From positions 186,001 to 250,000 of the IMG/VR virus record IMGVR_UViG_3300024999_000030: DNA of 64,000 bases. One strand, written 5' to 3'. Each line of letters opens with the position of its first letter. Within the stretch, counting starts at the first letter, position 1. Below are positions 10,483 through 50,112 of the stretch, piece by piece. The notes under the pieces are model-generated. The model was not told the origin of the DNA. It saw nothing but the letters and a program-made list of their open reading frames with translations, and ran no database searches. The position numbers and the translations under genes are program-made.

Positions 10483-10773
10483 ATGAATGGATTCACGAAC
10501 CATTATATTTCTGCAATGCAAGACTTCATCGCTAACCCCTGTGTAAAACGATGGCGAGGGGTTGAGAGATTAAGTGATCTTAATTGTAAATGTTTACTTT
10601 TAGGGGTTTCTCAAATAGGCTCCTGTGTCGGCTGTCCATTTTATTCTTTTCATCCGAATGGCAGTGCCTGTCCTCGCTTAAATACAGCCTCCAGAAAAAA
10701 ATTAAATTTGTTTATTCCAAGGTTAGTTCTTGCTTGTTTAGAAGCTATTGCTTATTTACAGGCTAAGGAGTAA
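10483..10773 (+). CDS. Four-Cys (FIxNP) family paralogue 1
   Basis: DFIANP...CKC...CVGCPF...CPR...LACLEAIAYL. Confidence 0.8.
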   Translation: MNGFTNHYISAMQDFIANPCVKRWRGVERLSDLNCKCLLLGVSQIGSCVGCPFYSFHPNGSACPRLNTASRKKLNLFIPRLVLACLEAIAYLQAKE

Positions 10774-10775
10774 AT

Positions 10776-11156
10776 ATGGCAAATTTAAGAAGGGTTACCG
10801 ATCAAAATCGTCAGGAACAAATTAAAGCCTTTGAGGCCTTTATTGATAATCCAACTTTGGAAAATCGGAAACACCTGGCGAAAGTGATGCTTTTTGATAG
10901 TGGGCGAGATGGCAAACGAGGCTTTTGTTCGCTTTCTCGGCGAGAAGATGAAGTCTATCCTATTGTTGAGGCTTGTGAGGGGTGCCCGTTTTTTACAAGT
11001 GGTCTCAAAAGTTATTGTCCAAGAACAGAATGGATAATGGAAGAGGACTTTCCTTCGTTAACCTTAAATCGTCGTGAAGAAATACAACAAGGCCAGGTTG
11101 CTGTTTTTATTCTGGCGTGTGTCCAGGCGATTGCTCACCTTAGGATTAAAGAGTAA
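10776..11156 (+). CDS. Four-Cys family paralogue 2
   Basis: AFIDNP...FCS...CEGCPF...YCPR...LACVQAIAHL. Confidence 0.8.
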   Translation: MANLRRVTDQNRQEQIKAFEAFIDNPTLENRKHLAKVMLFDSGRDGKRGFCSLSRREDEVYPIVEACEGCPFFTSGLKSYCPRTEWIMEEDFPSLTLNRREEIQQGQVAVFILACVQAIAHLRIKE

Positions 11157-11459
11157 ATGAAAGATATTTTGCAAAACTCTCTAAATGCTTTGCAAAATTT
11201 TATTGATAATCCTAATCCAGAAACCTTTAAACAGGTTTACGAATCTTTTGCAGTCTTTAGAGTATGTCCTCTTGCCACAAAATATGAAAATATAGATATG
11301 TATCATTGTGAAAATTGTCCATTTCCCCGTGTGTTTAATCGTACTCGACTATTACAATGCCTTAGACAATATGGATATAGCTTTGATTCATCGAAATATT
11401 TAGGCCAAATGCTTGTTGCTTGTATTGAAGCAAAGGTTCTTCTGGAGGGCAGTAAATGA
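11157..11459 (+). CDS. Four-Cys family paralogue 3
   Basis: NFIDNP...CPL...CENCPF...QCL...VACIEAKVLL. Confidence 0.8.
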   Translation: MKDILQNSLNALQNFIDNPNPETFKQVYESFAVFRVCPLATKYENIDMYHCENCPFPRVFNRTRLLQCLRQYGYSFDSSKYLGQMLVACIEAKVLLEGSK

Positions 11460-11809
11460 CGAGAATAGAAATACTTAAATCACAAATCAAAGCTCTTCAA
11501 TCTTTTATTAACAACCCAATTAAAAATAATTGGAATAATATTTCATTAGCTTTTACTCAGGGATCAGCAGGAGGTCAAAAATGTACTCTAGCTGGCCCCG
11601 ATAATTCATATGGAACATGTCGTTCGTGTGTTTGGGCTAAAATAGATTATACCTACCCACGAAGTAAACGGTTTCGTAAGTTGTTACTTGGACACACCAA
11701 TAGAGTAAAATACTGTGGACCAGCATATCCAGAGACCGAACAACTTCCTTCGGTTATCCTAGCCTGTATTGAATCTGTGGCTAAACTGGAGGTTCTTTTG
11801 GAGGAATAA
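11456..11809 (+). CDS. Four-Cys family paralogue 4
   Basis: SFINNP...KCTL...CRSCVW...YCGP...LACIESVAKL. Confidence 0.8.
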   Translation: MTRIEILKSQIKALQSFINNPIKNNWNNISLAFTQGSAGGQKCTLAGPDNSYGTCRSCVWAKIDYTYPRSKRFRKLLLGHTNRVKYCGPAYPETEQLPSVILACIESVAKLEVLLEE

Positions 11810-11810
11810 G

Positions 11811-12221
11811 ATGAAAAGAGAGAACATGGTAAGTGCCCACAATCTCAAACAACAGATTAGGGCGCTGGAAAACTTTATTTTTAATCCAATTAAATCCAAC
11901 TGGGCAGTTGTACATCGAGTTTTTTCTTATGATAACTATCAAGCCCATAAAAAATCCAACATAAAAGAAAACAGAAGTTGTTGTTCAGTTGCCTTTCTTT
12001 TATCCAGAAAAACCCTAACTCAAGATCAAGATGATAATTTCGCGTGCTCTACTTGTCCATTTTTCAAATTTCAAAATATTTGTTGCCCAAGAGCCGGCAT
12101 CAATGAAGACAGATGGCTAGAAGCAAAGACTTGGGAAGCCGTTCAAGAAAATCTACCACAAATTATTAAGAATTGTATTGAGTCTCTTGGGCTTATTAAA
12201 ACAGCCGAGGAGGGTCAATGA
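11811..12221 (+). CDS. Four-Cys family paralogue 5
   Basis: NFIFNP...SCC...CSTCPF...CCPR...KNCIESLGLI; GGAGG SD before 11811. Confidence 0.8.
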   Translation: MKRENMVSAHNLKQQIRALENFIFNPIKSNWAVVHRVFSYDNYQAHKKSNIKENRSCCSVAFLLSRKTLTQDQDDNFACSTCPFFKFQNICCPRAGINEDRWLEAKTWEAVQENLPQIIKNCIESLGLIKTAEEGQ

Positions 12222-12595
12222 GAAAAAGAATTCTTTTAGAGGAAGTGAATCATATTAATAAGGTCATTATTCTTTTAGAAAATTTTATTAATGATCCGAC
12301 AATACCTAAACTTCGGATGATTAGTGATAGTCTTAGAAACTATCCATATAGAGAAAATAAAATTTTTTCTTGTTTTATTAATGCCATCGTATTTACCGGA
12401 AATGAATATGAAAACAAAAGATGTAAACATTGCCCATGTAAGAGTGAACCGCTTATCAGTATGATAAACTGCTATGGTCAGCCTGGACTTTGTTTAGAGG
12501 ATCCAAGTGACGATATATTTTTTTGTAAAGACATTCCCGTTACCATTAAAGCCTTGTTGGAAATTATCGGACTATTAAAAACCAAACTCCCATAA
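12218..12595 (+). CDS. Four-Cys family paralogue 6
   Basis: NFINDP...SCF...CKHCPC...NCY...LLEIIGLL. Confidence 0.75.
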   Translation: MRKRILLEEVNHINKVIILLENFINDPTIPKLRMISDSLRNYPYRENKIFSCFINAIVFTGNEYENKRCKHCPCKSEPLISMINCYGQPGLCLEDPSDDIFFCKDIPVTIKALLEIIGLLKTKLP

Positions 12596-12596
12596 T

Positions 12597-12947
12597 ATGA
12601 AAGGAGAAGATATGTTTGAGTTAACTCAAGAATATATGGAACAGCTTGTAATTGACATGGAAACTTTCATATCTTCTCCTACAATAGCAAATTGGAAAAT
12701 CTTAACCTCCCGTATGAGGATAGCAAGTAAATGTCCATTCTCCATAGCAATAGATAATTGCTGTCCGCCTGGGTGGCCACGATCAGCCTGTAGAGCTTGT
12801 GGATTTGATGCACCATCTTCAATAGACCCATGGCTCGATGTTGAGACGGGCTGCAACTATCCGAGAGATGATAATTCTAAAGCTGAGGTTATACATTTAT
12901 TTATTCAGTTTATTGCTATGTATAAAATTTTAATTAAAGGAGATTAG
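12597..12947 (+). CDS. Four-Cys family paralogue 7
   Basis: TFISSP...KCPF...CRAC...GCN...FIQFIAMY. Confidence 0.7.
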   Translation: MKGEDMFELTQEYMEQLVIDMETFISSPTIANWKILTSRMRIASKCPFSIAIDNCCPPGWPRSACRACGFDAPSSIDPWLDVETGCNYPRDDNSKAEVIHLFIQFIAMYKILIKGD

Positions 12948-14019
12948 AAAATGAGTACGAAGAAAGTCAAACAAGAAATAGAAACTTTAATACGCCTTTC
13001 AAGTTTCGGGCCTCGACCGGATACTCCCGAGGGTGAAGCGTGGGGAAGGGGCGCTCGCTGGGGTTACGAACAGGCCATGAGCAGATCCACCGATAAAAAA
13101 GCAGCCGCTAAGGATGCAGCAAAAACCATTGCTTCGATGGCCGAAGCTAGTATCAAGCAACTCTTTATGTCTAATTTTATTAGACATAACAAACGGGTGG
13201 AACTTCTCAAAGAGCTTTCTGATGCCGTTGCTACTATCGAAGAGGGTCTTGAATATATCAGGGAGGAATAAATGAAGCGAGATTTCTACGCCGATCTTCA
13301 TGATGACATTATCGATGACGAATACGATAATTCTGAAAACATTTCTACATCTCAAGCTTCTCCCATTCGTCACCCTGAAGTAACGTCCAAATCGGGAACA
13401 AGATATATTTTTTTCCATAACCGCCGGCGCAAACATCATCTTCCGAGTTGGATGATAAAGCTTCAACATTTGGATTGGTGGGGCAAACACGACGGAGAAT
13501 ATTCTTTAGGGCGAATCCAACGAAGGCTTGATGCCCTGTTAATCTGCCCTCCTGTTAAAATTATGTCCCATTACCGTGTATTGGAAATTAATTATTTACA
13601 TGATAGGGGACTGTGGTTGGATTTTTCTAGCGCATATAGTTATGCGTTAGGAGTTTATCCCGACAACTGTTTGCATGATTCTTTTCGTTTTTCATCGTTG
13701 TTTTACTCAGGGCTTTGGGGGCCAGATCTTGAGAGTATAAGAAAAATTAAGTTAAAAGAGTTTCAAGACGCAGTTAAAGAGGCTCTTCCTGAATATGAAG
13801 AATTTTGGCCTAGCAAAATTGAAAGCTTGAAAAGAGCAATTACCTCTGCTCAAAAACAAACCGAAATTTTGCGAATTAAGAGAGAGAAGCGAATCGCCCA
13901 TCTCAAAGAGACCCATGGTAAAACTCCAAGATACTTAGATCATCAGCGCGTTCTATATGGAGTGGATGAGTTTGCTGATCCATATGAAGAAGATTCATCC
14001 AAAGAAGAAAGGGAGGAAC

Positions 14020-14508
14020 ATGATCGAGAGAATCGTGGTTTTCTCACGACGACAGATTGAAGAGCTTGCTTACAAGCCCTTACTTGAATTGGAAGAAGTG
14101 CGGGTGTCCACTGGACCATATGCCATTATCAGCATTACCGGTTCAGATGATGACCTTGCTCAGCTACCCCTTAATGCGGACTTCGTTCTTCGCTTAACCT
14201 TCGATGATATTCTTGAAAATATGAACGGTAAAGAAATTGATATCATTGGTGGTGGAACACTTAAACTTAAATTCATTACGCGAGACGACGCTCTTTCGAT
14301 TACTCATTTTTTTGAAGAAATAAAAGATAAGGTTTCTTTACTCGTTGTTCATTGTGGGGCTGGTATTTCCAGAAGCGCAGGCGTCGCTATTGCCATTGCC
14401 GAACAAGTAGATATTTCAATGATGGGTCATCTTATTTCTCAACATGAGTTTTTTAATCGCGATGTCTATGCGTTAATCAAACAAACTTTCAACTCCCATA
14501 AGGAGTAA
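14020..14508 (+). CDS. Protein tyrosine/dual-specificity phosphatase-like protein
   Basis: HCGAGISRSA = HCxxGxxR P-loop; GGAGG SD before ATG 14020. Confidence 0.85.
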   Translation: MIERIVVFSRRQIEELAYKPLLELEEVRVSTGPYAIISITGSDDDLAQLPLNADFVLRLTFDDILENMNGKEIDIIGGGTLKLKFITRDDALSITHFFEEIKDKVSLLVVHCGAGISRSAGVAIAIAEQVDISMMGHLISQHEFFNRDVYALIKQTFNSHKE

Positions 14509-18546: not shown

Positions 18547-18730
18547 GAGCTGAAATGAAATTTAATAAAGGACACATCTTAGAGGCTGGAGATAGACTCC
18601 ATACGATGATTATTTTATCGGAGGAGTTGCTTAGAAATCATCCAGCACTTAAAAAAGCCAAATTAAACAAACGCTTTAAGAAAGTGATTAAAAAACTTAA
18701 TAACATGTATCAAAAAGTTTGGCAATTAAA

Positions 18731-19303: not shown

Positions 19304-19310
19304 TATTATC

Positions 19311-19980
19311 TAGGGCCTCTTTCTGAATTGTAGGCTGAATTGACGAAAGCAGTGTGGACGAGATCAAACGGCTTAAATGAGCGTTTAGTCGCACTGAAAG
19401 GTTAAGGATGCCGAAGCCCTATTACATGGCGTGTCGGAAGAGGTGTCCCAGAAAGAAGGTGACTGTGTTTTATTGTCGCAGCCCTTGACTAATGTTTATA
19501 ATACAAAGTAATTGTATAAAAGAATATAATGAACGAGTAACCTGGGACGTAGGCTCATCCCCTCCTCAGGGCGTGTTAAATTTTTAAAACTGTTGCCTGA
19601 GACATCTTAACTAATGTTGGGTGTTGTAGAAGGGCGATAGTTAATTCTTGGATTAGAAATCATGCGGCCCCCTTATGATGAATTGAAACGTTTAATACCG
19701 CGCCAATCCCATAAGATGTGGTTCGAAAAACAACGCTGCAGCGTTGTAGTGACTCTAATCTAGAAAGGAGAATAACATTGGCCGCTTATATAAACATAAT
19801 GGTCAGATGTAGAAGCTCGGATTAAATAATCCCCATAACTAAAAAATGGAGTCGAGTGCCCGGGAAGTTGAACTGATATCCTTACAGGCTTTTAAAAATT
19901 AAGTCCACTATCCTGTGTTTAAAAATAAACCCAGGATCTGATGGTCAGATGTAAGATGTTATCAGTTTGCCCCGGGGCAA
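19311..19980 (+). ncRNA. Large structured non-coding region A
   Basis: No + strand ORF over 60 aa. Many stems by eye: TAGGGC/GCCCTA, CCTCTTTCTG/CAGAAAGAAGG, CTCAGG/CCTGAG, AACTGATA/TATCAGTT, CTTACA/TGTAAG, palindrome 19731..19746. Confidence 0.55.
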
Positions 19981-20035
19981 GGTTAATGCAGCCGGATGAT
20001 AATCCGCCAGTCCCAAGCCTGGAAATGCAGAGGGG
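19981..20035 (+). ncRNA. Twister ribozyme (P1-type order, weak or absent P1)
   Basis: U-AA, P2 UGC/GCA, A-GC, P3 CGGAU/AUCCG, P4 CCAG/CUGG, L4 UCCCAAGC, GA-GGG for T2 pseudoknot. Matches remembered twister consensus; predicted cut U19984/A19985. Confidence 0.85.
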
Positions 20036-20048
20036 AATAGGAAATGTT

Positions 20049-20360
20049 ATGAAAAAATATTCTATGCAAAATTTTAATGATGCTCTTGATAATTTAATTA
20101 ATAACCCGAGTAAAAAAACTTTCATTGCTTTTTTAAGAATTGCTGGTGAGGCTCCGGGAGATTGTCCACTATGTAGGTACTTAAGTAATGTCCGTAGACT
20201 AGATATACCTTGTTCATTTAAAGATTTGGATTGTCCTATGGGATTAAATTCAAATACCCATGAATTTGTATGTGCGCCATCATCTATAAATCTCATTCCT
20301 TTATCTAGAGTAGTAACCAAAGCAATCGAACTTAAAGCGTTCTTAGAAACAATAAAATAA
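20049..20360 (+). CDS. Four-Cys family paralogue 8
   Basis: NLINNP...DCPLC...CSF..DCP...VCAP...KAIELKAFL; the 5' extension in the ORF track overlaps the ribozyme. Confidence 0.75.
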   Translation: MKKYSMQNFNDALDNLINNPSKKTFIAFLRIAGEAPGDCPLCRYLSNVRRLDIPCSFKDLDCPMGLNSNTHEFVCAPSSINLIPLSRVVTKAIELKAFLETIK

Positions 20361-22727: not shown

Positions 22728-23060
22728 ATGCAACCATTTATTGCAGCACTTCAATCTTTTATCAATGAACCAAATTTAACCTCATGGTTAGATATGGTTG
22801 AAGTTTGGAGACATGAATCCTTACAAAGTAAAAACAAGGATTGCCCGATAAAATTTGAAATCGTCGGGATGAACACATTGATGTGTGGCGATTGTCCATT
22901 TTTAAATGCACATCCATGCCCATGGATAGTCAGTAATTTAGATTCCCCAAAAGGTAAAGAGCATTTTAAAGAAATACAAAGTATTCTTTTAGTCGATAGT
23001 ATTATTTTATTATCTAAATTACAAGCAATGGAAAATATAAATGTCAAAAAGAGAGACTGA
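22728..23060 (+). CDS. Four-Cys family paralogue 9
   Basis: SFINEP...DCPI...CGDCPF..PCPW...SIILLSKL. Confidence 0.8.
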   Translation: MQPFIAALQSFINEPNLTSWLDMVEVWRHESLQSKNKDCPIKFEIVGMNTLMCGDCPFLNAHPCPWIVSNLDSPKGKEHFKEIQSILLVDSIILLSKLQAMENINVKKRD

Positions 23061-23403
23061 TGCTAAAGTTATTCTTGTTAATTTTGTGAATCACCCAACA
23101 CCTGAAACTTGGGAAGAAGTACACAAATATTGGGAAATTCAAAATGCATGTCCATTTAATATAATGTATGAAGGCAGATGTGGTTGTTGTCCTTTTACAA
23201 GATTTGGAAAAAATCTTCATTTATCGATGCATGATTCAGCATTTGAACATCTTTGTCCATTTTATAAAAATACTCATTTAGATTTGAGTTCTAGGCTTGT
23301 TGCTAGTATTCAAGCCGTTGCTTATATAGAAACATATGAAAACTTAGAGATAGAGCAACTGGTTCCCCTGTGGACAAGGGAAATCAACAAGGGTGGAGGA
23401 TAA
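23041..23403 (+). CDS. Four-Cys family paralogue 10
   Basis: NFVNHP...ACPF...CGCCPF...LCPF...ASIQAVAYI. Confidence 0.8.
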   Translation: MSKRETDAKVILVNFVNHPTPETWEEVHKYWEIQNACPFNIMYEGRCGCCPFTRFGKNLHLSMHDSAFEHLCPFYKNTHLDLSSRLVASIQAVAYIETYENLEIEQLVPLWTREINKGGG

Positions 23404-23604: not shown

Positions 23605-23929
23605 ATGTTATATCAAAAAACAATTAATGCTTTAAGGTTATTTACAGAACAACCTAACCCCCATAATTGGAAAAATATTTCATTAGCATTAATTGATGAA
23701 TCTAATGAACTACTACAACAATGTTTATTGGGCTCTCCTGGACCAACCAAGGGATCTCCAGCCCATTGTTGTGATTGTCCATTTTGGCAAATATAAACAA
23801 ACTAATACATTTTGCCCTAGGTTTATATACAGAAGGCCTTCTATCGAAAGATTTGGAGAGGCAGTTTCCGTTGTTATGGCCATTCAAGCTATTGCTAGAT
23901 TAGAAATGTTAGCTGAAGAACATGAGTGA
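23605..23929 (+). pseudogene. Four-Cys family paralogue 11, split by +1 frameshift near 23780-23795
   Basis: Frame 1 LFTEQP...QCL...CCDCPFW stop; +1 frame continues KYKQTNTFCPR...MAIQAIARLE. Confidence 0.75.
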
Positions 23930-24221
23930 ATATATAAAAGATTATTCTTTTATTATTAACAGAATATTATTTAAAAAGGCATTGGAAGAATTTATATCTA
24001 ATGTTAACGAGGATTCATTCCAACTTTTGAAAAGATTTGCCTTGTCTGGTATATCATGTAGGGTATTGGCCCCCACTCGTTATCAAAATCCATATTGTTA
24101 TGGGTGTTGTTTCCAATCTGAGCGCGGGTGTATATTGAGCACAAATACCGCCGAAACAGTTCTTGGTAGTATACAGGCTTTAGCTTTTATTCTTTCGGAG
24201 GAGGAAGATGGCAGAACCTAG
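23922..24221 (+). CDS. Four-Cys family paralogue 12
   Basis: EFISNV...SCR...CYGCCF..GCIL...GSIQALAFI. Confidence 0.75.
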   Translation: MSEYIKDYSFIINRILFKKALEEFISNVNEDSFQLLKRFALSGISCRVLAPTRYQNPYCYGCCFQSERGCILSTNTAETVLGSIQALAFILSEEEDGRT

Positions 24222-24474
24222 TAATATAAAATACCTTAAGAGGTTTATTGCGTGCCCCTCTTCTGAAAATTGGGAAGAGGTAAAAATTCATGCGGTAAGA
24301 GATTGTTATTTTGGGTCTGAATGCCCATTAATAAATATCAACAATGGGTGTTGTCCACTTTTAACTAGTGTACCGTCCGAAAACTATCCCACTTCAGATG
24401 ACTTACCTAAGCTCACCGTCATTGCTATTCAATATTTGGCGCTACTGGAATCTAGGGGAACAAAAAACTACTAA
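24208..24474 (+). CDS. Four-Cys family paralogue 13
   Basis: RFIACP...DCY..ECPL...CCPL...IAIQYLALL. Confidence 0.75.
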   Translation: MAEPSNIKYLKRFIACPSSENWEEVKIHAVRDCYFGSECPLININNGCCPLLTSVPSENYPTSDDLPKLTVIAIQYLALLESRGTKNY

Positions 24475-24831: not shown

Positions 24832-24961
24832 CCATAGAGAGGATCTGGACACGGGACAACCCCGGCTCTCTATGGCGTGTTGACTTCCCCGACCCTCGAA
24901 AGGTCCGGCCTGATCCTCAGGCAGGAAGTACGGTGGGGCTGGGGCAGCTGGCCCCGGCCCC
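24832..24961 (+). ncRNA. GC-rich structured intergenic RNA ending in a terminator-like hairpin
   Basis: CCATAGAGAG/CTCTCTATGG; three-way junction ACTTCC/GGAAGT with GACC/GGTC and GCCTGA/TCAGGC; GGGGCTGGGGC/GCCCCGGCCCC followed by T-rich tract. Confidence 0.55.
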
Positions 24962-24991: not shown

Positions 24992-25480
24992 ATGAAATAT
25001 TACAGAGTAAATAATCTTAAAGAAAATCACATGGGCCTTCAATATAAAACTGGTTTAGTGGAAGATTATCGACGATGTGGGATTGGTTTTCTAGGTGGTA
25101 TTCATTTTGCTAGTGTAGATATTCTTGCATTCATTAATTTTGGACCATGGATTAGGGAAGTAACTATTCCCTCCAACACTATTATTCATAAGGCCGGATA
25201 CAACGCTAAAGAGTTTAAGGCTCAACGAGTTATTCTTGGTGAACGAAGGAAAATTACACTATCAGTAATTAAAGAATTAGTTTCTGAGGGGGCAGATGTC
25301 AACGCCGTTAATGGGACTCCCCTTATCAATGCCACCTGTCTTAGAAATTTTGGGCTTGTGAAGACACTGTTGGACTGTGGTGCAAATCCCATGGTGTCTG
25401 ATGCTGAGGCTCTGAAAATAGCAAGTAAGATTAATCGCTATGATATTTTAAACCTTTTAACTGGGACCACGAATGAGTAA
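24992..25480 (+). CDS. Ankyrin-repeat-containing protein
   Basis: LVSEGADVNA.NGTPLINA...LVKTLLDCGANP; GGAGG SD. Confidence 0.75.
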   Translation: MKYYRVNNLKENHMGLQYKTGLVEDYRRCGIGFLGGIHFASVDILAFINFGPWIREVTIPSNTIIHKAGYNAKEFKAQRVILGERRKITLSVIKELVSEGADVNAVNGTPLINATCLRNFGLVKTLLDCGANPMVSDAEALKIASKINRYDILNLLTGTTNE

Positions 25481-25793
25481 ACCTAAAAAATCATCTAAAT
25501 TTAACGATGATGAAATTGTTGTTTTCGTTTATAATTTAATGAAAGAATTTATTAGTAATCCAAATATTAAATTATGGGAAGACATTCTTGAAGGCTTTCC
25601 ATGTCGATTTGATGATTGTGAAAATTGTCCCATGAGTCGAATCAATTGTTTTGATATTGATAGTGAGGGGTGGGAAAAAACAACAGGCATGTGTGTAACT
25701 TGCTCTATAGAAATTATAGCTATGTGTGAGTCTGAGATTTTTCCATTCAGACCTTCTACATGTAACTCAAAAGAAAAGTGGAGAATGGAATGA
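25473..25793 (+). CDS. Four-Cys family paralogue 14
   Basis: EFISNP...PCR..CENCPM..NCF...CSIEIIAMC. Confidence 0.8.
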   Translation: MSKPKKSSKFNDDEIVVFVYNLMKEFISNPNIKLWEDILEGFPCRFDDCENCPMSRINCFDIDSEGWEKTTGMCVTCSIEIIAMCESEIFPFRPSTCNSKEKWRME

Positions 25794-27430: not shown

Positions 27431-27787
27431 ATGATTCCACATAGGGAGTGGATAAATTCTATGGAAAATTTTATCCGCGATCCTAGTTTTGAAAACATGT
27501 TGATGGTAAGAAAAATTAGAGACGATTACGGTTGCTCCAGCTACTCTCGTGATGGACAGCAGGGAAGGGGACCGCTTTGGCCTAGAGATGGTAGAAGCAT
27601 ATCCAGTTTATGTAAGGAGTGTCCATTCCAAACACATGTGGGCGCGGTTGGAGGATGGTGTTTATTACAAGAGTTAAGAGATAAAAAACATTTTATTACT
27701 TACTCTGGTTTATTAATTGAGCGATCAAAAAAAGCTGTAAATGATTTACGTGGAATGTGGTCAGATTCCCGAGGAAATCAATTCTGA
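27431..27787 (+). CDS. Four-Cys family paralogue 15
   Basis: NFIRDP...GCS...CKECPF...WCLL. Confidence 0.75.
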   Translation: MIPHREWINSMENFIRDPSFENMLMVRKIRDDYGCSSYSRDGQQGRGPLWPRDGRSISSLCKECPFQTHVGAVGGWCLLQELRDKKHFITYSGLLIERSKKAVNDLRGMWSDSRGNQF

Positions 27788-29589: not shown

Positions 29590-29592
29590 CAC

Positions 29593-31468: not shown

Positions 31469-31804
31469 ATGGAAAATTTTTCTTCATATATATATGAGCT
31501 TTATAGTGCTTCTAAGTCTTTTATTGAGGGTCCAAATGAAACAACTTGGAATGAACTTTCGTTAGCAACGGTCACGTGTCAGCTCTACAAATATAAAAAA
31601 GATAAAACTGAGGAATCCTATAAACATCATTGTGAGGATTGTCCTTTTTGGCCTATTTTACATTCACATAGTCATATTAATAATCCTGGGTGTCGTCACG
31701 ATTCCAGATCTAAATTACCAATAGCCGTTAGGTTAAGTAAAATTATAGAACTCATGGCTCTATTGGAAACTGAGTTTAGCTGGGTGGGTAAATATGGGAG
31801 ATGA
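31469..31804 (+). CDS. Four-Cys family paralogue 16
   Basis: SFIEGP...TCQL...CEDCPF...GCR...KIIELMALL. Confidence 0.8.
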   Translation: MENFSSYIYELYSASKSFIEGPNETTWNELSLATVTCQLYKYKKDKTEESYKHHCEDCPFWPILHSHSHINNPGCRHDSRSKLPIAVRLSKIIELMALLETEFSWVGKYGR

Positions 31805-32081
31805 AGGAAAAGTAGGACAAATGTATGACATGCGTACTATAAAACAACTTACAAATTTTATTAATCAACCTACTCAGGTAAATTGGGAAAAAATAAACTT
31901 TACTCATGATAGTTGCTATATATCTGACGAAGCTAATTGTTGTCATAATTGCCCATTTTTAAATTCATCAAATGGAGTTTGTTTAGCAATACATGGAAAT
32001 TTAGAAATAGGAAAAAAATTAGCATTGAGCATTGCGTTACGCGCAAAGCTGCAAGCTATTTGGGGTGAATATGAGCTATAG
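31794..32081 (+). CDS. Four-Cys family paralogue 17
   Basis: NFINQP...SCYI..CCHNCPF..VCL...LSIALRAKL. Confidence 0.8.
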   Translation: MGDEGKVGQMYDMRTIKQLTNFINQPTQVNWEKINFTHDSCYISDEANCCHNCPFLNSSNGVCLAIHGNLEIGKKLALSIALRAKLQAIWGEYEL

Positions 32082-32349
32082 CGGAAAATGGGGCAGAGAA
32101 TATGACATGCGCATAATGAAACAGCTTAAAATTTTTATTGATAAACCTACACAAAATAATTGGGAAAAAATACCCTTCACTTCCGATGGTTGCTATATAT
32201 CTATCGAAGCTGGATGTTGTCATGAATGCCCATTTGACAATGAAGAGAGTTGTAAAGCTGTAAAATCTGGATTAGACATTGGAAAAAGATTAGCATTAAG
32301 CATTGAATTACTTGCAAAATTACAAGTTGTTTGGGGTGAAGATGGGTAG
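32071..32349 (+). CDS. Four-Cys family paralogue 18 (recent duplicate of 17)
   Basis: IFIDKP...GCYI..CCHECPF..SCK...LSIELLAKL. Confidence 0.8.
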   Translation: MSYSGKWGREYDMRIMKQLKIFIDKPTQNNWEKIPFTSDGCYISIEAGCCHECPFDNEESCKAVKSGLDIGKRLALSIELLAKLQVVWGEDG

Positions 32350-32640
32350 ATTAGATGATATGATAAAAGCTTTACAAGATTTTATTCGTGATCCCAACAC
32401 ACAAAATTGGCTTAATATTAATAAAGTAAGGGTCGATGTTATTAGAGGCGGATGTTTTTTCTCTTATAGTGTCTCAACCAGCGATGAGTGTCGAGATTGT
32501 CCATATGGACGAAAAAATACAACAGACCCATTTTTTTGTACTTCAGCTCTTTGGAAAAAAAGGCGGAAGAAGGAAATACAGCTAGAAAATTACTTGGGGC
32601 AATAGAAATTTTGGCCAAACTAGAGGCCGTGAAAGGATAA
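32342..32640 (+). pseudogene. Four-Cys family paralogue 19, frameshifted at or near A7 run 32555..32561
   Basis: DFIRDP...GCF...CRDCPY...FCT; the -1 frame supplies the missing helix TARKLLGAIEILAKLE, stop at 32640. Confidence 0.8.
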
Positions 32641-37759: not shown

Positions 37760-37983
37760 ATGTTTGAAATTTTAATCAGGGGTTTTAAAACTAAAGCACA
37801 AGCAGAGGCATTTTATAGCTGGTATGAAGGACAAGGAGAACAAGACGCTTGTATATGGTTTGAGTGTAGAAAAGAAGAAGGCGACATAGATGTTGATTCT
37901 ATGTTGACTGATGTCAATGTTGGGAATAAGTGGGTAGGAGATTGTTTGACCTTTGAAGTAACCCCTAATTAAACGGAGATCGC

Positions 37984-42083: not shown

Positions 42084-42515
42084 ATGCCAGATAAAATTAA
42101 AGTTACATATTCATCTGGAGTTATTAAAGAAGTAACGGCGACTACCGCAGCTAAGATTTACAGAAGGCAAGCCAGACAAGCTATTGAACGGGCTATGGCA
42201 CATGATATAGAATATTATGAATTGTTTAACATTTTAAAACATCCCGTAAATGACTATAGATGTCTTATTTCCGAATGTCTTACTGGAAAAAAGGGTTCAT
42301 ATTCTTTTTCTACTTGTGAAGAATGTTTTTTTGAAAGTAAATATGGTTGTGTTCTTAAGCTTATTACTAGTGAGCTAATGACGGAAGATACAGCTAGTTC
42401 CTATATTAAAAAATTACTGGACCTGAAGGGCATCGGCACATTAGAACTTTTTATTATTAAAGTTCATGCGGGGTTGCAAGCCACTGGACTTGGAAACAAA
42501 TCCCAAAAGAGGTGA
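42084..42515 (+). CDS. Degenerate four-Cys family paralogue 20
   Basis: RCL..CL...CEECFF..YGCVL; lacks a clear FIxNP. Confidence 0.5.
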   Translation: MPDKIKVTYSSGVIKEVTATTAAKIYRRQARQAIERAMAHDIEYYELFNILKHPVNDYRCLISECLTGKKGSYSFSTCEECFFESKYGCVLKLITSELMTEDTASSYIKKLLDLKGIGTLELFIIKVHAGLQATGLGNKSQKR

Positions 42516-42868: not shown

Positions 42869-43603
42869 TTTCTTTCTTCATTCAAACTATTCCCCACATA
42901 AAGAACCATCTCCCTTCCCTCCTAATTATAGGTGAATGAAGGAGTAATGTTCTAGGAAATTGAATTTGATAGAAGAAAGAAAACTCCAATTAGGCCGATG
43001 GCGATTGTTTGAACGCTCAACTCTCGTTTGCGTGAAGACCCACTCAGATCGATTGGCCAGGCGTTTACATGGAAGAGTAGACATGGCTAGAGATATCTCT
43101 CTTGTTTATTCTTTCTTTTATGAGTGTGTTACTCTATTGGGGCGGTTTCGATACCAATCCACAGTATGCGTCCATGATAAGTTATGGAATAGAGATGGCA
43201 TACTCTAGAAGGCGGACGGTCGTGTCCGCCTTCGCCAAACACCTGTATTACTGAGAGGGTGTATGGTTCCTAAAGTTGGAACCATTTACTACATCGTCGG
43301 TTCTTTTGCAGAGAAAAAGGTCAATGGCATGACGCCGCAAAGATTGTTGTGCTTCGGCACACCTTTGAGTCTGGGCAGGCTTATTATATAAGCCCAGCCG
43401 GTTCTGCAATTCCCAACTCGCGCTTATGAATCACAAATCAACGTTGCTACGTGAGTGCAGTCAGGCAGCTGACCAGTAATACTTATTGAATTGACTACCG
43501 GTAGTGGTCATTCAATCGGGGTCATCATGGTGATGACCCCACAATCCGGCTAAAACTAATCTTCTGGTGGAGCCGGGGAAGAGCATGTGCTCAGGAAGAT
43601 TAG
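42869..43603 (+). ncRNA. Large structured non-coding region E (about 735 nt)
   Basis: GAAGGCGGAC/GTCCGCCTTC, ATGGTTCC/GGAACCAT, GTGC-UUCG-GCAC, TTGCAGA/TCTGCAA, GGGGTCATCA/TGATGACCCC, CTAATCTTC/GAAGATTAG. Confidence 0.65.
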
Positions 43604-43620
43604 GGAATAGGAGATAACTA

Positions 43621-44152: not shown

Positions 44153-44665
44153 ATGTTTCCAATGTATAATATCAATGAATTTATTAATTTGATAGATAAG
44201 TTTTTATCAAACCCGACTATTAATTCCGCTCATTCTTTCTTAACTAATCCCTATATGTTTGGTGGTTTTGGAGCTGCTCCTGGAAGAGTAAGTGCCAAGG
44301 CTATATATTATGATTGTCAATTTCATCATCATGTTCTTGGGGGGCAGGAGAGAAGTCAACAGTATTGTGATCGATGTCCATTTGCTCATAAAGGCAATTT
44401 AGTAACCAAGAATCAAGCCTTCTATTCAAACTGTTCTCTTGTACATTCATTTGTATTATTTGAAGTACCTCCACATTATTCTGATGTTACATGTCTCGAC
44501 ACAAATGAACAATATGGATTATCTAAGTGTTCTCTTGTTAATTTAATTCCAAAGTTAATTATGGGGTTAATAACCATGAAAGCTATTTGTGAAATTAAAA
44601 AAGAAAAACTCCGACAAGTTAATGAAAAAAGGAGAATGTCCCGTGGTAAATCCCAAAACCCGTAG
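44153..44665 (+). CDS. Four-Cys family paralogue 21
   Basis: KFLSNP...DCQF...CDRCPF...NCSL...GLITMKAIC. Confidence 0.75.
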   Translation: MFPMYNINEFINLIDKFLSNPTINSAHSFLTNPYMFGGFGAAPGRVSAKAIYYDCQFHHHVLGGQERSQQYCDRCPFAHKGNLVTKNQAFYSNCSLVHSFVLFEVPPHYSDVTCLDTNEQYGLSKCSLVNLIPKLIMGLITMKAICEIKKEKLRQVNEKRRMSRGKSQNP

Positions 44666-46714: not shown

Positions 46715-47054
46715 ATGAGGCCCGTGGACATGATGTTGGAAGAATTTTCTATTTTTGTAGCTCATCCAACTAAGCGAACAGCGACAAGTGCTATTAATTC
46801 CTTAGTTGGACTTAATAACACAAGGACTAAATGTGATGCAGTATTTTTCAACTGTATGGAGTGTCCCCTTTTTTTTAAAGGAACCATATACAGAAACTCG
46901 ATATGGAGGCACATACCCAACACTAAAAAGCATTTATTGTTTGGCCGTTAAAATGAATATGAAATTACACTTACATAATTTTGAAACAGAAATCATGTCG
47001 GAATTTGTAAAAAAGGGTCTTGAGTTTGTAGCTGCCCTTCAGATGAAGGTGTGA
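46715..47054 (+). pseudogene. Four-Cys family paralogue 22, frameshifted at T8 (46869..46876)
   Basis: IFVAHP...KCD..CMECPL; the +1 frame continues LKEPY...YCL...KGLEFVAALQ. Confidence 0.75.
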
Positions 47055-47987
47055 TAAATGCAACAAGACTTAAACAAAAAAGATTTCGTAAGTCCGCTTA
47101 GCACCCTACAAACTAAGTACGGATGGACTTTTGGTAAAGCTAAATCCATTACCGACATTAAGGGTAAAGACATTAAGGGTCAATTTTGTCAAACAATTAA
47201 ACATAAGTTTTGGGGTGAAAGCCTACCAATGAAATTGTTGATTCATGCGGCGGTTTCCGCAATACAATTTTGCGTAGCTTATGCTATTTTTGTTTGGTTG
47301 ATTGGTGCGGATGCCCCTACGATAATTACTATTTGGATTGTTATGAGTTTTCTTGATACAACTTCTGCAATTAAAGACGCCTGGGGTAATGCATTTTTTC
47401 AAACAATGTTGATTTATGCTCCAGATGGAGTGGTTCTATCTGGAGAAGATGTAAAAACCAGCATCAAAGGTGGAGATGCCCCGAAAGGAGATCTATGATT
47501 CGCACGATAGAAGAGTTTTTTGTTGAGTCCGAGGCAATTGGTAAACAACTTTTAGCTGGAGAGGAGGGACATAAGATTGATGTCTCTCCAGAAATATTAG
47601 CAAAGATAGTCAGTAATTTTAATGATTCATTAAAAACCCTAGACCACTTAAAGACGTGGGTTGCGGATCTTGAGAATGCTGAGCCCGAAGATGACGAAGA
47701 AGCGGAACTTATGTCTCGTCTTTTAGCTGGGCAGGTGTTGGGTATTCGCGCTCATTTTAGATTATTTGAATATCTAGATAAATATGAACCTGGATTTAAA
47801 AATGGATACACAGCACCACTTAAAGAAGTTATGACTACAATGTATGAAACTATCAAAGCTAAATTTCCATCAGCCCTTAATTTGGCAGACGAAATTGAGA
47901 ATGGTAATGAAAGCGCTGGCTGTGCTCATGACTGCAAGGGATGTCATGGAGGGTGTGGTGGCGACTAAAGATGTTATTCTTATTAGA

Positions 47988-48503
47988 ATGGAAGGATTTA
48001 GAAACGCAATTGATGCGTTTTTAACTGATCCCGGCGAGATTCCATTACTGAAAATTAGAAAGGAATATTTAAAAAGAAATCAATGTCCCTTGCAAGTGGG
48101 GCTTGGAGCGGGTACAAAGAGTTGGAACAATGTAAGTAATCCAATTATGAGTCCGCTGACTGACACCAACCCCATGGTAAAAGATTTTCATGACAGGATG
48201 CAGGAGACTTTGAAGGGTGGCTCTTCTTATTATAATTGTAATTTCTGTTCCATTTGCCCCGTGTCGATTCTCAATAAACAGCGATGTGGCATAGACGAAT
48301 ACTATGCTAAGGCTAGAGCTAGAATGGCTTTTCAGCAAGGCCTGAAGAAAAACCATGAAAAATTAGATAGCAGAACTAAAGAAGTTTTAGATGATCACCG
48401 TTCTGGTTGCTCTGATCTTATGAGCGTTTGTCTCGCTGGTTTTATCGAACTTTCGGCAGTATTAACTTCTATTCTTCATGGAGAGGAATGCACCAATGCC
48501 TAA
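47988..48503 (+). CDS. Four-Cys family paralogue 23
   Basis: AFLTDP...QCPL...CNFCSICPV...RCG...GFIELSAVL; start uncertain. Confidence 0.7.
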   Translation: MEGFRNAIDAFLTDPGEIPLLKIRKEYLKRNQCPLQVGLGAGTKSWNNVSNPIMSPLTDTNPMVKDFHDRMQETLKGGSSYYNCNFCSICPVSILNKQRCGIDEYYAKARARMAFQQGLKKNHEKLDSRTKEVLDDHRSGCSDLMSVCLAGFIELSAVLTSILHGEECTNA

Positions 48504-48693
48504 TTGCACCTGTGGACATTCTCATAAAAAACATACGGAACACATTTGTTCAGACCTTAGACGCGGATGTACAGAATGTGACTGTGTGGCCTTCTTCCCC
48601 GTAGATAAGGACAAGCCTTGTTCCTGCGGTCACAATTTGAGTGACCACGATGCTTTTGGTTGTGTGAATTGCGAATGTGACATCAAGGTTTAA
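48496..48693 (+). CDS. Small Cys/His-rich metal-binding protein with two CxCGH units
   Basis: CTCGHSHKKH...CTECDC and CSCGHNLSDH...CVNCEC. Confidence 0.6.
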   Translation: MPNCTCGHSHKKHTEHICSDLRRGCTECDCVAFFPVDKDKPCSCGHNLSDHDAFGCVNCECDIKV

Positions 48694-49297
48694 TATGTCA
48701 GCATTTAGATCGGGAGACTTAGTTACCGTCTCCCCCTTTGACGACGACTTCTTCTTTCCGTTTGTCGGGACAATAGTCCAAGTGACAAGGGATACAGATA
48801 GGGAACTATATTTAGTTACCTGCTGCGAAGGAGAAGTATATACTGTTGTCGAGGAGCAACTGACATTTGCAGAGCCTAGGGAGAAATGATGGACCTCAAG
48901 TGCCTTATTTGTGGTGCTGCTATTTCTTGTATAATTCCAGAAGAGTGGCCGTACCAAAATATTTTTCCCGTAAATTGCACATCTTGTCACAAACAACAGC
49001 TCATTACTATTAAGGACTAATGGAATGGGGAGAAGTGTTAGACATTCTTAATCTAGCTTTTACTGATAAAGGTGTGGCTCTTCGAGATATTAGGAACGCA
49101 TCGTCTCTTTCCCCTCCCGCTGAAACGGTATATAGAGAAGAGGGGGAAAATAATACTGTTGCCCCATCTAATGTTGGCGTGACTAACATAGCTGACTGGA
49201 AAAAGAGGAAAAACAAATGAAATGGTTAAAAATTGTAATCATTGACTTCTGGTTTAATGGTTTTGAATATTGGCGAGAAAAATTTTTGAGACGGTAA

Positions 49298-49690
49298 ATG
49301 TTATCAAGGGCCGTTGCTTTACGCCAAATTGAATTGTTTATAAAAACTCAAGATATTAATATAATTATCCAATTGACTGAAAACATCATGAGTGACTCAG
49401 GAAATCATTTTAAATTTTCTTTATTAAAAGAGTGTCCATTTGTTAATAGTAATATAACCTGTAGAAGCTTTTTAAAAAATTGTCCATTGTACATGTCATG
49501 GAGAAAAAGATTTCCATATTCTTATTGCAGTTGTGCCTTCTCTGAAATATCAATGTTAGTACATGGCGGTGGGCCGACTGCAATAAAATTTATTATGAGC
49601 GAATTACTTTTAGCTTTAATAATAATGGTTGGAACTGTTAAAGCGGACATGACCGCCATAGAGGAAAAATGGCCAAATCGGTTACCCTAG
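49298..49690 (+). CDS. Four-Cys family paralogue 24
   Basis: LFIKTQ...ECPF...TCR..NCPL...YCSC...ALIIMVGTV. Confidence 0.65.
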   Translation: MLSRAVALRQIELFIKTQDINIIIQLTENIMSDSGNHFKFSLLKECPFVNSNITCRSFLKNCPLYMSWRKRFPYSYCSCAFSEISMLVHGGGPTAIKFIMSELLLALIIMVGTVKADMTAIEEKWPNRLP

Positions 49691-50112
49691 TCCTTACTGA
49701 GAGATTTGTAGAATCCCTCAATAATTTTATTGCTAGTCCGTCTGGATCTACCTATTCTATTCTAGCTGACACCTGGAAGGTTAATAGGGTCTCGTGGATA
49801 AAAAACAAGAACGAATATAAATTGGGACTAGGGGCGCGAACGGCAAACAAAACTCTACCAATTCTTATGTGTCAAGCTAGAGCGATTCCAGCGCAAGGTT
49901 CATGTTTTGGTTGTGACTTCTATTCTCATAGTGGGTGTCTTATATATAGTGTTAGGCATAAAAGCACCATTAGTAAGCGCCTCTTAGCTGCGATGGAAAT
50001 ACAAGCAGCATTAAATACTGTGGAGTATTCCACTTCAGATGATGCTTTTGTTGCTAAGTGTGCAGGTGAAGAAAGAATGAAAAAACTTATTGAAGAACAA
50101 GACGATGAATGA
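49669..50112 (+). CDS. Four-Cys family paralogue 25
   Basis: NFIASP...MCQ...CFGCDF..GCLI...AAMEIQAAL. Confidence 0.75.
   Translation: MAKSVTLVLTERFVESLNNFIASPSGSTYSILADTWKVNRVSWIKNKNEYKLGLGARTANKTLPILMCQARAIPAQGSCFGCDFYSHSGCLIYSVRHKSTISKRLLAAMEIQAALNTVEYSTSDDAFVAKCAGEERMKKLIEEQDDE

Follow-up and report, generated by a model that had tools for sequence, protein, structure and literature searches.

Why would a phage devote so much of its genome to copies of one small protein, and what do these copies have in common? A preliminary description of a 64,000-nucleotide stretch of a 333-kb uncultured groundwater phage (IMGVR_UViG_3300024999_000030, positions 186,001 to 250,000; hereafter the window) proposed that about 25 paralogues of an unrecognized four-Cys protein form a helical scaffold displaying hypervariable loops, that is, a diversified library of anti-defense decoys or host-protein inhibitors. 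We determined whether these copies form a single family, whether that family is already known, and whether the sequences behave as such a library would.

A family of four-cysteine proteins in tandem arrays

To define the family, we built a hidden Markov model (HMM) from 16 obvious copies and iterated it on all six-frame stop-to-stop segments of the window. The search converged on 21 plus-strand segments (E 1e-14 to 1e-24), and a broader 69-sequence profile recovered the same set plus weaker ones. No minus-strand segment scored better than E 0.7, and the best unrelated plus-strand segment scored E 0.07. The tally is 25 plus-strand copies, of which 19 are intact, 3 are split by frameshifts and 3 are divergent. 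Thus, the observation of an expanded family is confirmed. More copies lie just outside the window, so the genome has at least 30. The arrays sit where they had been described, at 10.5-12.9 kb (7 copies), 22.7-24.5 kb (5), 31.5-32.6 kb (4) and 49.3-50.1 kb (2), and the motifs are also as described. The features are listed below; copies are intact unless stated otherwise, E values are from the first profile unless the broad profile is named, and labels beginning with L denote foreign sequences carrying relatives, with percent identity given for orthologues in a related phage.

10483..10773 (+), copy 1 (96 aa), first gene of array 1; E 1.4e-24; orthologue L005:6809-7114, 53%
10776..11156 (+), copy 2 (126 aa), array 1; E 3.7e-23; no positional orthologue in the related phage's six-gene array
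11157..11459 (+), copy 3 (100 aa), array 1; E 1.1e-24; orthologue L005:7119-7418, 41%
11456..11809 (+), copy 4 (117 aa), array 1, its start overlapping the previous stop; E 3.2e-23; orthologue L005:7420-7803, 46%
11811..12221 (+), copy 5 (136 aa), array 1; E 3.9e-23; orthologue L005:7793-8224, 45%, with conserved loop motifs
12218..12595 (+), copy 6 (125 aa), array 1; E 5.3e-19; orthologue L005:8221-8592, 43%
12597..12947 (+), copy 7 (116 aa), last gene of array 1; E 3.6e-22; orthologue L005:8610-8912, 27%
19941..20360 (+), single copy (139-aa ORF, with the family domain starting near 20064); E 3.8e-17; orthologue L004:6602-6928, 36%
22728..23060 (+), copy (110 aa, exactly four Cys), first gene of array 2; E 2.5e-22
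23041..23403 (+), copy (120 aa), array 2; E 6e-21; orthologue L004:10001-10309, 46%
23605..23929 (+), frameshift-split copy (segments 23605/23693), array 2; the N half (23605-23796, E 1.2e-14) ends just after CxxCPF and the C half (E 6.4e-4, broad profile) continues in another frame to 23929; the halves align to the intact L004:10508-10834 in different frames; the truncated ORF is present on 21 contigs and was seen in 24 contigs read
23922..24221 (+), copy (99 aa), array 2; E 1.6e-14
24208..24474 (+), copy (88 aa), last family gene of array 2; E 2.3e-17; orthologue L004:11143-11412, 51%
24935..24961 (+), strong intrinsic-terminator-like hairpin downstream of array 2 and of the small membrane-protein gene at 24489-24800; 11-bp stem with 10 GC pairs and a T-rich tail, a consensus match only
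25473..25793 (+), single copy (106 aa); E 5.8e-14; orthologue L004:12434-12709, 43%
27431..27787 (+), single copy (118 aa); E 5e-20
31469..31804 (+), copy (111 aa), first gene of array 3; E 2e-19; nearest relative L017:3-323
31794..32081 (+), copy (95 aa), array 3, one of the only young duplicate pair; E 4.1e-19; 60% protein identity to 32071, with a 173-nt DNA repeat at 75% identity
32071..32349 (+), copy (92 aa), array 3, the young duplicate of 31794; E 2.1e-18
32342..32640 (+), frameshift-split copy (segments 32342/32566), array 3; the N part (E 4.9e-19) runs to 32605 and the C-terminal helix is encoded in another frame (32566-32640), with the junction in an A7 run at 32555-32561; the pieces align to the intact L017:599-886 in frames 1 and 3; the truncated ORF is on 21 contigs
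42084..42515 (+), divergent member (143 aa) with an N-terminal extension; E 1.2e-4 (broad profile); counterpart in the related phage L017:7838-8281, E 6e-4
44153..44665 (+), single copy (170 aa) with the longest loops; E 1.1e-17; orthologue L017:10671-11138
46715..47054 (+), frameshift-split copy (segments 46715/46866); the N half (46715-46951) and the C half (46866-47054) are in different frames, with the junction in a C4T8 tract at 46865-46876; both align to the intact L017:13291-13632 (E 5.5e-24) in frames 1 and 2; an independent 332,725-bp assembly is identical here
47844..48503 (+), weak, divergent candidate of uncertain membership (219-aa ORF, with the family-like part starting near residue 60); E 0.016 only (broad profile); the F(L)xDP motif, C..C..CP..C and the C-terminal helix motif are visible by eye
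49298..49690 (+), divergent member (130 aa), first gene of pair 4; E 2e-4 (broad profile)
49669..50112 (+), copy (147 aa), second gene of pair 4; E 6.3e-16; orthologues L017:16537-16998 and L021:210-695

Genes within the arrays are coupled by TAAATG and ATGA junctions, many with GGAGG ribosome-binding sites. Each copy has an N-terminal helical hairpin (L..FI.NP....W), a loop region with four near-invariant Cys (C1-x(n)-C2xxC3-P-F-x(n)-C4) and a long C-terminal helix (..IE..A.L). In 69 sequences, the four Cys and the Pro of FIxNP were the only invariant or at least 90% conserved positions, and 86 of 91 full-length members from eight sources had Cys in all four columns. Cys content is 5.1%, against 1.76% in 59 neighboring ORFs. 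Loop lengths vary between paralogues, with 4-21 residues from C1 to C2, 5-20 from C3 to C4 and 2-34 from C4 to the helix. No signal peptide or convincing membrane segment was found, and pI ranges from 4.7 to 9.2.

Predicted fold and comparison with known families

Next, we wanted to examine the fold. AlphaFold2 modeled the protein confidently as a three-helix bundle capped by the Cys loops, with three long helices and lower confidence in the loops. The model of copy 10483 had a pLDDT of 82.5 and a pTM of 0.78, and that of copy 22728, made with 69 sequences, had a pLDDT of 85.7 and a pTM of 0.79, with helices at residues 2-13, 17-32 and 74-109. Convergence of the four Cys on one site is inferred from their invariance. 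Searches of Pfam, PHROGs, NCBIfam, PADLOC, PDB and BFVD returned no match to a named family beyond a single chance-level PHROGs structural hit at E 0.02, consistent with the preliminary description, which had recognized no family.

The four Cys had been likened to [4Fe-4S] loops such as that of EndoIII/MutY, with Zn equally possible. However, this resemblance is only a shared CxxCP knuckle, because the spacing fits neither the EndoIII/MutY loop nor WhiB. WhiB-like (Wbl) [4Fe-4S] proteins (PF02467), including the copies carried by actinobacteriophages, are likewise small, helical, cytoplasmic proteins with four Cys that include a C-x-x-C-P knuckle. They are often encoded by phages (705 phage records match TM4 gp49) and act by binding another protein, in their case sigma factor region 4, an activity that, like the cytoplasmic location, is only inferred for the present family. 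Homology to them is excluded at the level tested: a direct profile-profile comparison (hhalign) against phage WhiB-like proteins gave 0.35% probability, none of 19 members matched PF02467 while the control scored 5e-21, and Foldseek returned no WhiB structure. In addition, the C3-C4 spacer is variable at 6-21 residues instead of a fixed 5, C1 follows a two-helix hairpin instead of lying near the N terminus, and there is no G-[VI]-W-G-G turn and no basic tail. The family occurs as arrays of 7-30 copies, not as a single gene, and in phages of 35-51% GC, which is not obviously actinobacterial.

Zinc-binding anti-sigma (ZAS) domains such as RsrA (zf-HC2, PF13490) are also small helical bundles that hold one metal through Cys ligands including a CxxC and act by sequestering a partner protein, features that for our family are inferred. 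However, the defining H-x3-C-x2-C motif is absent because no His is conserved, CxxC is in the middle of the ligand order and not last, and there was no Pfam match at E up to 1.

Paralogue-specific loops are retained

We then asked whether the loops are hypervariable, as had been claimed. Compared with a related phage that shares only 53% median protein identity, the nearest relative of 15 of 21 window copies was the positional orthologue. Loops were 31-37% identical between orthologues but 12-18% identical between paralogues. The loops are therefore diverged and individually retained, and neither "hypervariable" nor "library" is supported. The idea that the loops are targets of a diversity-generating retroelement or another programmed hypermutation system, for which the impression of hypervariability was the only support, is effectively refuted for the window. 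There was no reverse transcriptase among the window's Pfam hits and no template/variable repeat pair, the only sizeable DNA repeat was the 75%-identical duplication in array 3, and independent assemblies were identical over 5.4 kb that includes four copies.

To examine selection, we used the younger array of L008, where synonymous sites are saturated (pS 0.6 to 0.8), so that the test is weak. Given this caveat, pN was below pS in every region, and no region showed pN/pS above 1. pN was lowest in the C-terminal helix (0.23) and the CxxC knuckle (0.26) and highest in the loops (0.41 to 0.45). The terminal helices are the most conserved parts (pN 0.23 to 0.33), and the C-terminal helix is almost invariant in the L008 array. 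This fits a fold constraint but fits a shared partner equally well. One alternative is that the proteins are Fe-S (or redox- or metal-sensing) regulators that all dock through these helices on one common partner, such as the host or phage RNA polymerase or a sigma factor, with the variable loops tuning specificity, much as WhiB-like proteins work but without homology to them. The CxxCP knuckle, in which Pro follows C3 in 67 of 91 members, is in keeping with this reading. However, 25 to 30 regulators for one partner are hard to rationalize and the conserved hydrophobic positions look like bundle core, not a surface, and we consider this reading unlikely.

A largely redundant or selfish expansion, by neutral birth and death of a duplicating gene, could also produce many copies. 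Three of 25 copies are frameshifted, so individual copies can be lost. Copy number differs between relatives, because copy 10776 has no counterpart and L017 has an extra copy (P0047), and homopolymer runs are overrepresented in family genes. However, most copies are retained one to one across deep divergence together with their own loops, and phage genomes are under strong pressure against dead weight, yet the family takes 13.7% of the window. This explanation is improbable.

Distribution and genomic context

Among 1.84 billion representative proteins, only 68 hits appeared, of which about 48 were foreign relatives. All those examined are on metagenomic, phage-like contigs, none of the 20 foreign clusters examined comes from an isolate genome, and every longer contig examined carries the genes as arrays. 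The family thus occurs only in a few uncultured phage lineages among those examined. Arrays recur in further lineages, with about 16 copies in L008, at least 25 in 15 kb in L013, at least 7 in L015 and at least 15 in L018.

The surrounding genes are huge-phage accessory cargo, with accessory and metabolic genes and no structural genes in 64 kb. This bears on the possibility that the proteins are virion associated, as packaged internal or ejected proteins or minor decoration proteins present as many variants. Large phages package families of small proteins, and nothing in the sequence excludes packaging. However, there are no recognizable capsid-targeting or cleavage motifs, which together with the gene context and the PHROGs result makes this reading unlikely.

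Many tandem paralogues with a conserved N-terminal helix and a variable Cys-containing middle also superficially resemble prochlorosin-type precursor families (Nif11 or NHLP leaders), in which tens of paralogues have a conserved N-terminal part and a variable Cys-containing part, and so could suggest precursors of ribosomally made, posttranslationally modified peptides. Here, however, the variable part is internal and is flanked by a conserved C-terminal helix that is predicted to pack on the N-terminal hairpin as one folded domain, and the proteins, at 90 to 170 aa, are larger. None of 59 other window ORFs matched a radical-SAM enzyme, lanthipeptide synthetase or YcaO protein, and the ABC system present is a binding-protein-dependent importer, not a peptidase-containing exporter. 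This reading is very unlikely.

A working model for the family

The preliminary interpretation is thus partly supported: the helical scaffold with four conserved Cys, the divergence of paralogues mainly in loops and surfaces, and the absence of a named family hold, whereas a rapidly diversifying library does not, and a role as anti-defense or host-protein binders remains a reasonable inference. Our analysis establishes the family itself, its architecture, the Cys conservation, its array organization, its restriction to phage-like contigs among the relatives examined, the retention of orthologues and purifying selection; metal binding, cytoplasmic location, the binding of distinct targets and the biological role are inferences from these data.

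In this view, whose structural and evolutionary parts are well supported but which as a whole, with its inferred function, we hold only tentatively, the genes encode a phage-restricted family of small (about 90 to 170 aa) cytoplasmic proteins in which the polypeptide between helix 2 and helix 3 is gathered into a cap by the four Cys, which most likely bind one metal center, either structural Zn(II) or an Fe-S cluster. The conserved residues would be the bundle core and the metal ligands, while loops and helix surfaces differ between paralogues. The family expanded into cotranscribed, translationally coupled tandem arrays before this phage and its relative diverged, with each paralogue since kept with its own loops. 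The diverged helical multigene families of large eukaryotic viruses, such as the poxvirus Bcl-2-like immunomodulators, offer an analogy: many paralogues per genome share one small helical scaffold, sequence identity falls to around 20% while the fold is kept, each paralogue is retained between related viruses, and each poxvirus copy binds a different host protein. The folds and hosts are unrelated, and the phage family adds the four-Cys site and is arranged in tight tandem operons. The most likely working model is therefore a set of individually maintained, specialized binding modules, in which each copy would recognize a different host or phage macromolecule, probably for host takeover or counter-defense.

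Identification of the family copies in the window

The preliminary description reported about 25 small four-Cys paralogues, partly in tandem arrays. To determine whether this observation holds, we first listed the open reading frames, in which plus-strand ORFs of 88-170 aa with the described motifs were obvious. We then built an HMM from 16 clear copies and iterated it over every stop-to-stop segment of all six frames. The search converged on 21 plus-strand segments, with E values from 1e-14 to 1e-24, and a broader 69-sequence profile added weaker members, whereas nothing on the minus strand scored better than E 0.7. The tally is 19 intact copies, 3 copies split by frameshifts, and 3 divergent copies, which makes 25, as had been estimated. 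Thus, the observation is confirmed, and the results below extend it. The paralogues are very diverged, with a median identity of 22% and a single young pair that reaches 60%. The arrays, frameshift-split copies, and divergent copies are as follows.

10483-12947 (+), array of 7 genes
22728-24474 (+), array of 5 genes
31469-32640 (+), array of 4 genes
49298-50112 (+), array of 2 genes
23605-23929 (+), copy split by a frameshift
32342-32640 (+), copy split by a frameshift, with the junction in an A7 tract at 32555-32561
46715-47054 (+), copy split by a frameshift, with the junction in a C4T8 tract at 46865-46876
42084 (+), start of a divergent copy (E 1.2e-4)
49298 (+), start of a divergent copy (E 2e-4)
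47844 (+), start of a divergent copy of uncertain membership (E 0.016)

Genomic setting

The window is part of a contig of about 332.7 kb that was assembled independently many times from Rifle aquifer groundwater (PRJNA268031). The records include NCBI GCA_902730515.1 and IMGVR_UViG_3300024999_000030, and the contig start differs between assemblies. All long ORFs are on one strand, and GC is about 0.39. The syntenic contig of a related phage (L017) has a GC of 0.51 despite conserved gene order, which is a large compositional shift between related phages. A megablast search of 12 kb against deposited phages gave no DNA match, and the best match to any deposited phage was 33% protein identity. 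Literature searches and the huge-phage survey paper gave no description of the family, its host, or its clade.

The other genes in the window are typical huge-phage accessory cargo: a binding-protein-dependent ABC importer, PRPP synthetase and nicotinamide or nicotinate phosphoribosyltransferase-like genes, an isochorismatase-family protein, NT5C and ClpP, a ribosomal L7/L12-like protein, an ankyrin protein, a dual-specificity phosphatase, a GNAT, AAA+ ATPases, and a MoxR/VWA pair. Features of the window outside the family are as follows.

13957-14508, dual-specificity protein phosphatase-like gene (HCGAGISRS P-loop; Pfam DSPc E 7e-5) two genes after the first array, conserved near the arrays in the related phage (64% identity) and in L018, a contig of the same broad clade (42%)
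35547-39647, complete binding-protein-dependent ABC importer, in which the substrate-binding protein (NMT1/phosphonate-binding type) is fused to a C-terminal OmpA-like peptidoglycan-binding domain and is followed by a permease and an ATPase; conserved in the related phage (L017:3640-7747)
39783-42071 and 50714-53490, NAD-salvage and nucleotide cluster of PRPP synthetase-like, nicotinamide/nicotinate phosphoribosyltransferase-like, NT5C, and isochorismatase-family genes, plus a ClpP protease gene (about 52894-53490), assigned by PHROGs/Pfam and by synteny with L017
46120-46482, ribosomal protein L7/L12 C-terminal-domain gene (Pfam E 4.5e-7), also present in the related phage
152-556, 5648-7366, and 18719-19303, second, smaller paralogue set, in which the 572-aa protein shares a C-terminal segment with the 134-aa protein (66-nt repeat 485-550 / 7295-7360) and a CxxC-containing segment with the 194-aa protein (39-nt repeat 7202-7240 / 19139-19177), supported by cross-hits to the related phage's counterparts
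16994-17536 and 17548-18120, two adjacent genes of 180 and 190 aa that look like tandem paralogues, with similar N-terminal K..I.E.K..I...GGK.P.R.LS starts and coiled-coil-like tails; their orthologues in the related phage are only 30-32% identical, which places them among the fastest-evolving genes of the region
19304-19940, 29121-29858, 43209-43620, and 63077-64000, unusually long stretches without an ORF of 55 aa or more in an otherwise tightly packed genome, with no Rfam family and no tRNA
24935-24961 (+), strong terminator-like hairpin following the array at 22728-24474

Next, we looked for signals governing the arrays. Array genes are translationally coupled through TAAATG and ATGA junctions, and many have GGAGG sites. 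Sigma-70-type promoters were not enriched, there was no recurrent intergenic motif, and searches for Rfam families and tRNAs found none.

Architecture and predicted fold

We next wanted to determine which residues define the family. Members share an N-terminal hairpin (L..FI.NP....W), four Cys arranged as C-x(n)-CxxC(P)-x(n)-C, and a C-terminal helix (..IE..A.L), and they occur in tandem arrays on phage contigs. Across 69 sequences from several phages, only the four Cys and the Pro of FIxNP are invariant or at least 90% conserved. Of 91 full-length members, 86 have Cys in all four columns, and the other five have a Cys one or two positions away; Pro follows C3 in 67 of the 91. In one lineage, a sub-array at L018:5757-8568 has the knuckle changed from C-x-x-C-P to C-P-x-x-C (C-x3-C, for example CPPEC and CPTEC), while the other two Cys and both helices are kept. 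Loop lengths vary between paralogues, at 4-21 (C1-C2), 5-20 (C3-C4), and 2-34 (C4 to helix) residues.

AlphaFold2 gave confident models of two members. The 96-aa protein at 10483, modeled with a 19-sequence alignment, had a pLDDT of 82.5 and a pTM of 0.78, with long helices at residues 3-17, 21-33, and 74-95 and a block-mean pLDDT of 64-75 in the Cys-loop region. The 110-aa protein at 22728, modeled with the 69-sequence alignment, had a pLDDT of 85.7 and a pTM of 0.79, with long helices at 2-13, 17-32, and 74-109 and a block-mean pLDDT of 61-80 in the Cys-loop region. The conserved non-Cys positions are hydrophobic positions of these helices, which we infer to be the bundle core. The proteins have no signal peptide or convincing membrane segment, their pI ranges from 4.7 to 9.2, and their Cys content is 5.1%, against 1.76% in neighboring genes. 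Four near-invariant Cys in a protein inferred to be cytoplasmic point to a metal site, although Zn and Fe-S cannot be told apart from sequence. Pfam found no domain fused to any longer member.

Distribution of the family

To examine how widely the family occurs, we ran an exhaustive profile search of 1.84 billion representative proteins, which gave only 68 hits at E below 1e-3. Seventeen are the window's own proteins, 3 are spurious repeat proteins, and about 48 are foreign small proteins with the same architecture. Twenty foreign clusters were looked up, and all are metagenomic (JGI, ENA, Logan), tiny, and at most named "hypothetical protein." A tblastn search with two members gave no hit in deposited phage genomes, and P0016 was not found in IMG/VR. 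Every longer contig that could be fetched carries the family as arrays.

Contigs from other phages that carry the family
L004/L005 and L017; syntenic related phage, JGI 3300005259; orthologous arrays
L021; closer relative (VWA protein 79% identical); orthologues present
L018; same broad clade; at least 15 copies in 20 kb
L008; 121.6-kb contig; about 16 tandem copies
L013; 27-kb contig; at least 25 copies in 15 kb
L015; 6.4-kb contig; at least 7 copies

Copies also lie outside the window in the same genome, which therefore has at least 30. Four more tandem copies lie about 8-10 kb upstream of the window start (L023:151-1830). Five tandem longer proteins of 209-284 aa lie about 1.5-5 kb downstream of the window end (L022:14473-17907). 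These share the N-terminal hairpin, C1, and the CxxC knuckle (hhalign probability 88.7%, E 2.6e-6) but have an extra N-terminal domain of about 70 aa and a different C-terminal helix ending in ..NPP.

Retention and divergence of the paralogues

The preliminary description had proposed that the loops are hypervariable and that the family forms a diversified binder library. We compared orthologues with paralogues. Window paralogues pair one-to-one, in order, with paralogues of the related phage at 27-53% identity, and for 15 of 21 window copies the nearest neighbor in a family tree is that positional orthologue. The median identity of family orthologues is 43%, against 53% for 27 neighboring genes, so the family evolves somewhat faster but within the same range. 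In the terminal helices, orthologues are 41-48% identical and paralogues 22-24%, whereas in the loops, orthologues are 31-37% identical and paralogues 12-18%. Each paralogue therefore keeps its own loops, which are diverged, not hypervariable. Programmed diversification by a diversity-generating retroelement was also rejected, because the window has no reverse transcriptase domain and no template/variable repeat pair.

Loop and helix selection was then examined in the 121.6-kb contig L008. In L008 and L015, the copies form lineage-specific clades (12 of 12 and 6 of 7, respectively). Synonymous sites in L008 are saturated (pS 0.6-0.8), and pN is lowest in the C-terminal helix (0.23) and the knuckle (0.26) and highest in the loops (0.41-0.45). 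No region has a pN/pS above 1. Given the caveat that this is a weak test for positive selection, the result shows purifying selection without gene conversion; gene conversion as the cause of the near-invariant C-terminal helix in L008 was rejected because synonymous sites there are saturated.

Turnover does occur. Window copy 10776 has no counterpart in the related phage, the related phage has an extra copy (P0047), and the three frameshifted window copies have intact orthologues there. A largely redundant expansion nevertheless remains an improbable account of the family. Two of the three frameshift junctions lie in homopolymer tracts, the A7 and C4T8 runs, and the breaks recur in independent assemblies. 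Polymorphism of the C4T8 tract was rejected, because an independent assembly is identical and the low contig count came from gene calling. Homopolymer runs of 7 or more bases are 2.6 times over-represented in family genes, with 9 of 25 runs in 13.7% of the bases (3.4 expected); for runs of 6 or more, 34 of 126 fall there (17.2 expected). These counts were not controlled for the lower GC of the family genes, which may explain part of the excess. The breaks could be pseudogenes, on/off switching, or sites of transcriptional or translational slippage.

Comparison with known families

The preliminary description recognized no named family and had suggested building a profile to search for one. Profile scans of 19 members against Pfam, PHROGs, NCBIfam, and PADLOC gave only chance-level hits: PADLOC gave 0 families at E up to 0.1, and PHROGs gave only single hits at E 0.02 or more. 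The family thus matches no defense or counterdefense family in PADLOC-DB and no phage orthologous group in PHROGs. PDB sequence searches with two profiles gave nothing better than E 0.14. Foldseek searches of both models against PDB and of one against BFVD gave nothing better than E 0.6; the best PDB hits had E values of 4.0-5.5 and TM scores below 0.45 and were generic helical bundles with rmsd above 8 Å.

The closest idea was that of the phage WhiB-like (Wbl) Fe-S proteins, and homology to them was rejected. None of 19 members matched the Pfam model PF02467 at E up to 1, whereas the positive control, TM4 gp49, scored 5.2e-21. An hhalign comparison of the 69-sequence alignment with an alignment of six annotated phage WhiB proteins gave a probability of 0.35% and an E of 0.17, with only 17 columns around CxxCP aligned. 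The Wbl alignment shows C-x22-C-x2-C-x5-C and GIWGG, within the Wbl pattern of C-x(n)-C-x2-C-x5-C followed by a G-[VI]-W-G-G turn, whereas in the window family the C3-C4 spacer varies from 6 to 21 residues and no such turn is conserved. Foldseek of both models against PDB returned no Wbl chain.

The other candidates also failed. ZAS anti-sigma domains (zf-HC2, PF13490) require an H-x3-C-x2-C motif, but no His is conserved in the 69 sequences, and there was no Pfam hit. The EndoIII/MutY Fe-S cluster loop and ferredoxin-type [4Fe-4S] motifs have the fixed spacings C-x6-C-x2-C-x5-C and C-x2-C-x2-C-x3-C-P, respectively, whereas the spacing here is C-x(4-21)-C-x2-C-x(6-21)-C, and there were no Fer4 or HhH-GPD Pfam hits. 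RiPP precursors of the Nif11 or NHLP leader type have a leader, a C-terminal variable core, and adjacent maturation enzymes. Here, the variable part is internal, the C-terminal helix is conserved and part of the predicted fold, the window has no maturation-enzyme domains, and there was no NCBIfam leader-peptide hit; this reading was rejected.

Interpretation

Taken together, the analyses support well a new, phage-restricted family of small proteins, predicted to be cytoplasmic and three-helical, with a near-invariant four-Cys site; the family is organized in arrays inferred to be co-transcribed, is old, and is individually maintained. What these proteins do is inferred, as is metal binding at the four Cys. 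Our tentative reading is that the copies are specialized binding modules with different targets, used for host takeover or counterdefense, which would work like the diverged helical multigene families of large eukaryotic viruses. The main rival, which we consider unlikely, is a set of Fe-S or metal-sensing regulators that dock on one shared partner through the conserved helices. Virion-associated proteins are less likely still, RiPP precursors are very improbable, and targets of diversity-generating retroelements more so. The interpretation in the preliminary description is therefore partly supported: the scaffold and the absence of a named family hold, the hypervariable library does not, and the proposed function remains an inference.

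A bolder possibility, unlikely but not excluded, is that this is the first phage counterpart of the host-interaction multigene families of giant and pox viruses. In this view, a new metal-cluster fold would be used as a modular scaffold, with about 30 specialized copies per genome, each neutralizing or redirecting a different host protein or defense system, and individual copies would be switched off and on through frameshifts in homopolymer tracts. Two of the three broken copies are interrupted inside A7 or C4T8 runs, and such runs are 2-2.6 times over-represented in family genes. Viral multigene families of small scaffold proteins are already known, whereas the protein family described here is new. 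It is large, sharply defined, and confined to poorly understood huge phages, but nothing yet shows what it does.

Huge phages carry hundreds of genes of unknown function, and few of these fall into recognizable families. Here, one undescribed family takes up 13.7% of a 64-kb stretch, has at least 30 copies in a 333-kb genome, and recurs as arrays of 7 to at least 25 copies in several uncultured phage lineages. The four near-invariant cysteines make it a well-defined target that lends itself to biochemistry, and if the site holds an Fe-S cluster, it would be a new cluster-binding fold. Even without a known function, the profile built here gives a marker for this group of phages. The one-to-one retention of paralogues between diverged phages argues that each copy does something distinct. 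If the copies are target-specific binders, they would be a ready-made set of small, stable inhibitors or adaptors of bacterial proteins and a handle on how huge phages take over their hosts.
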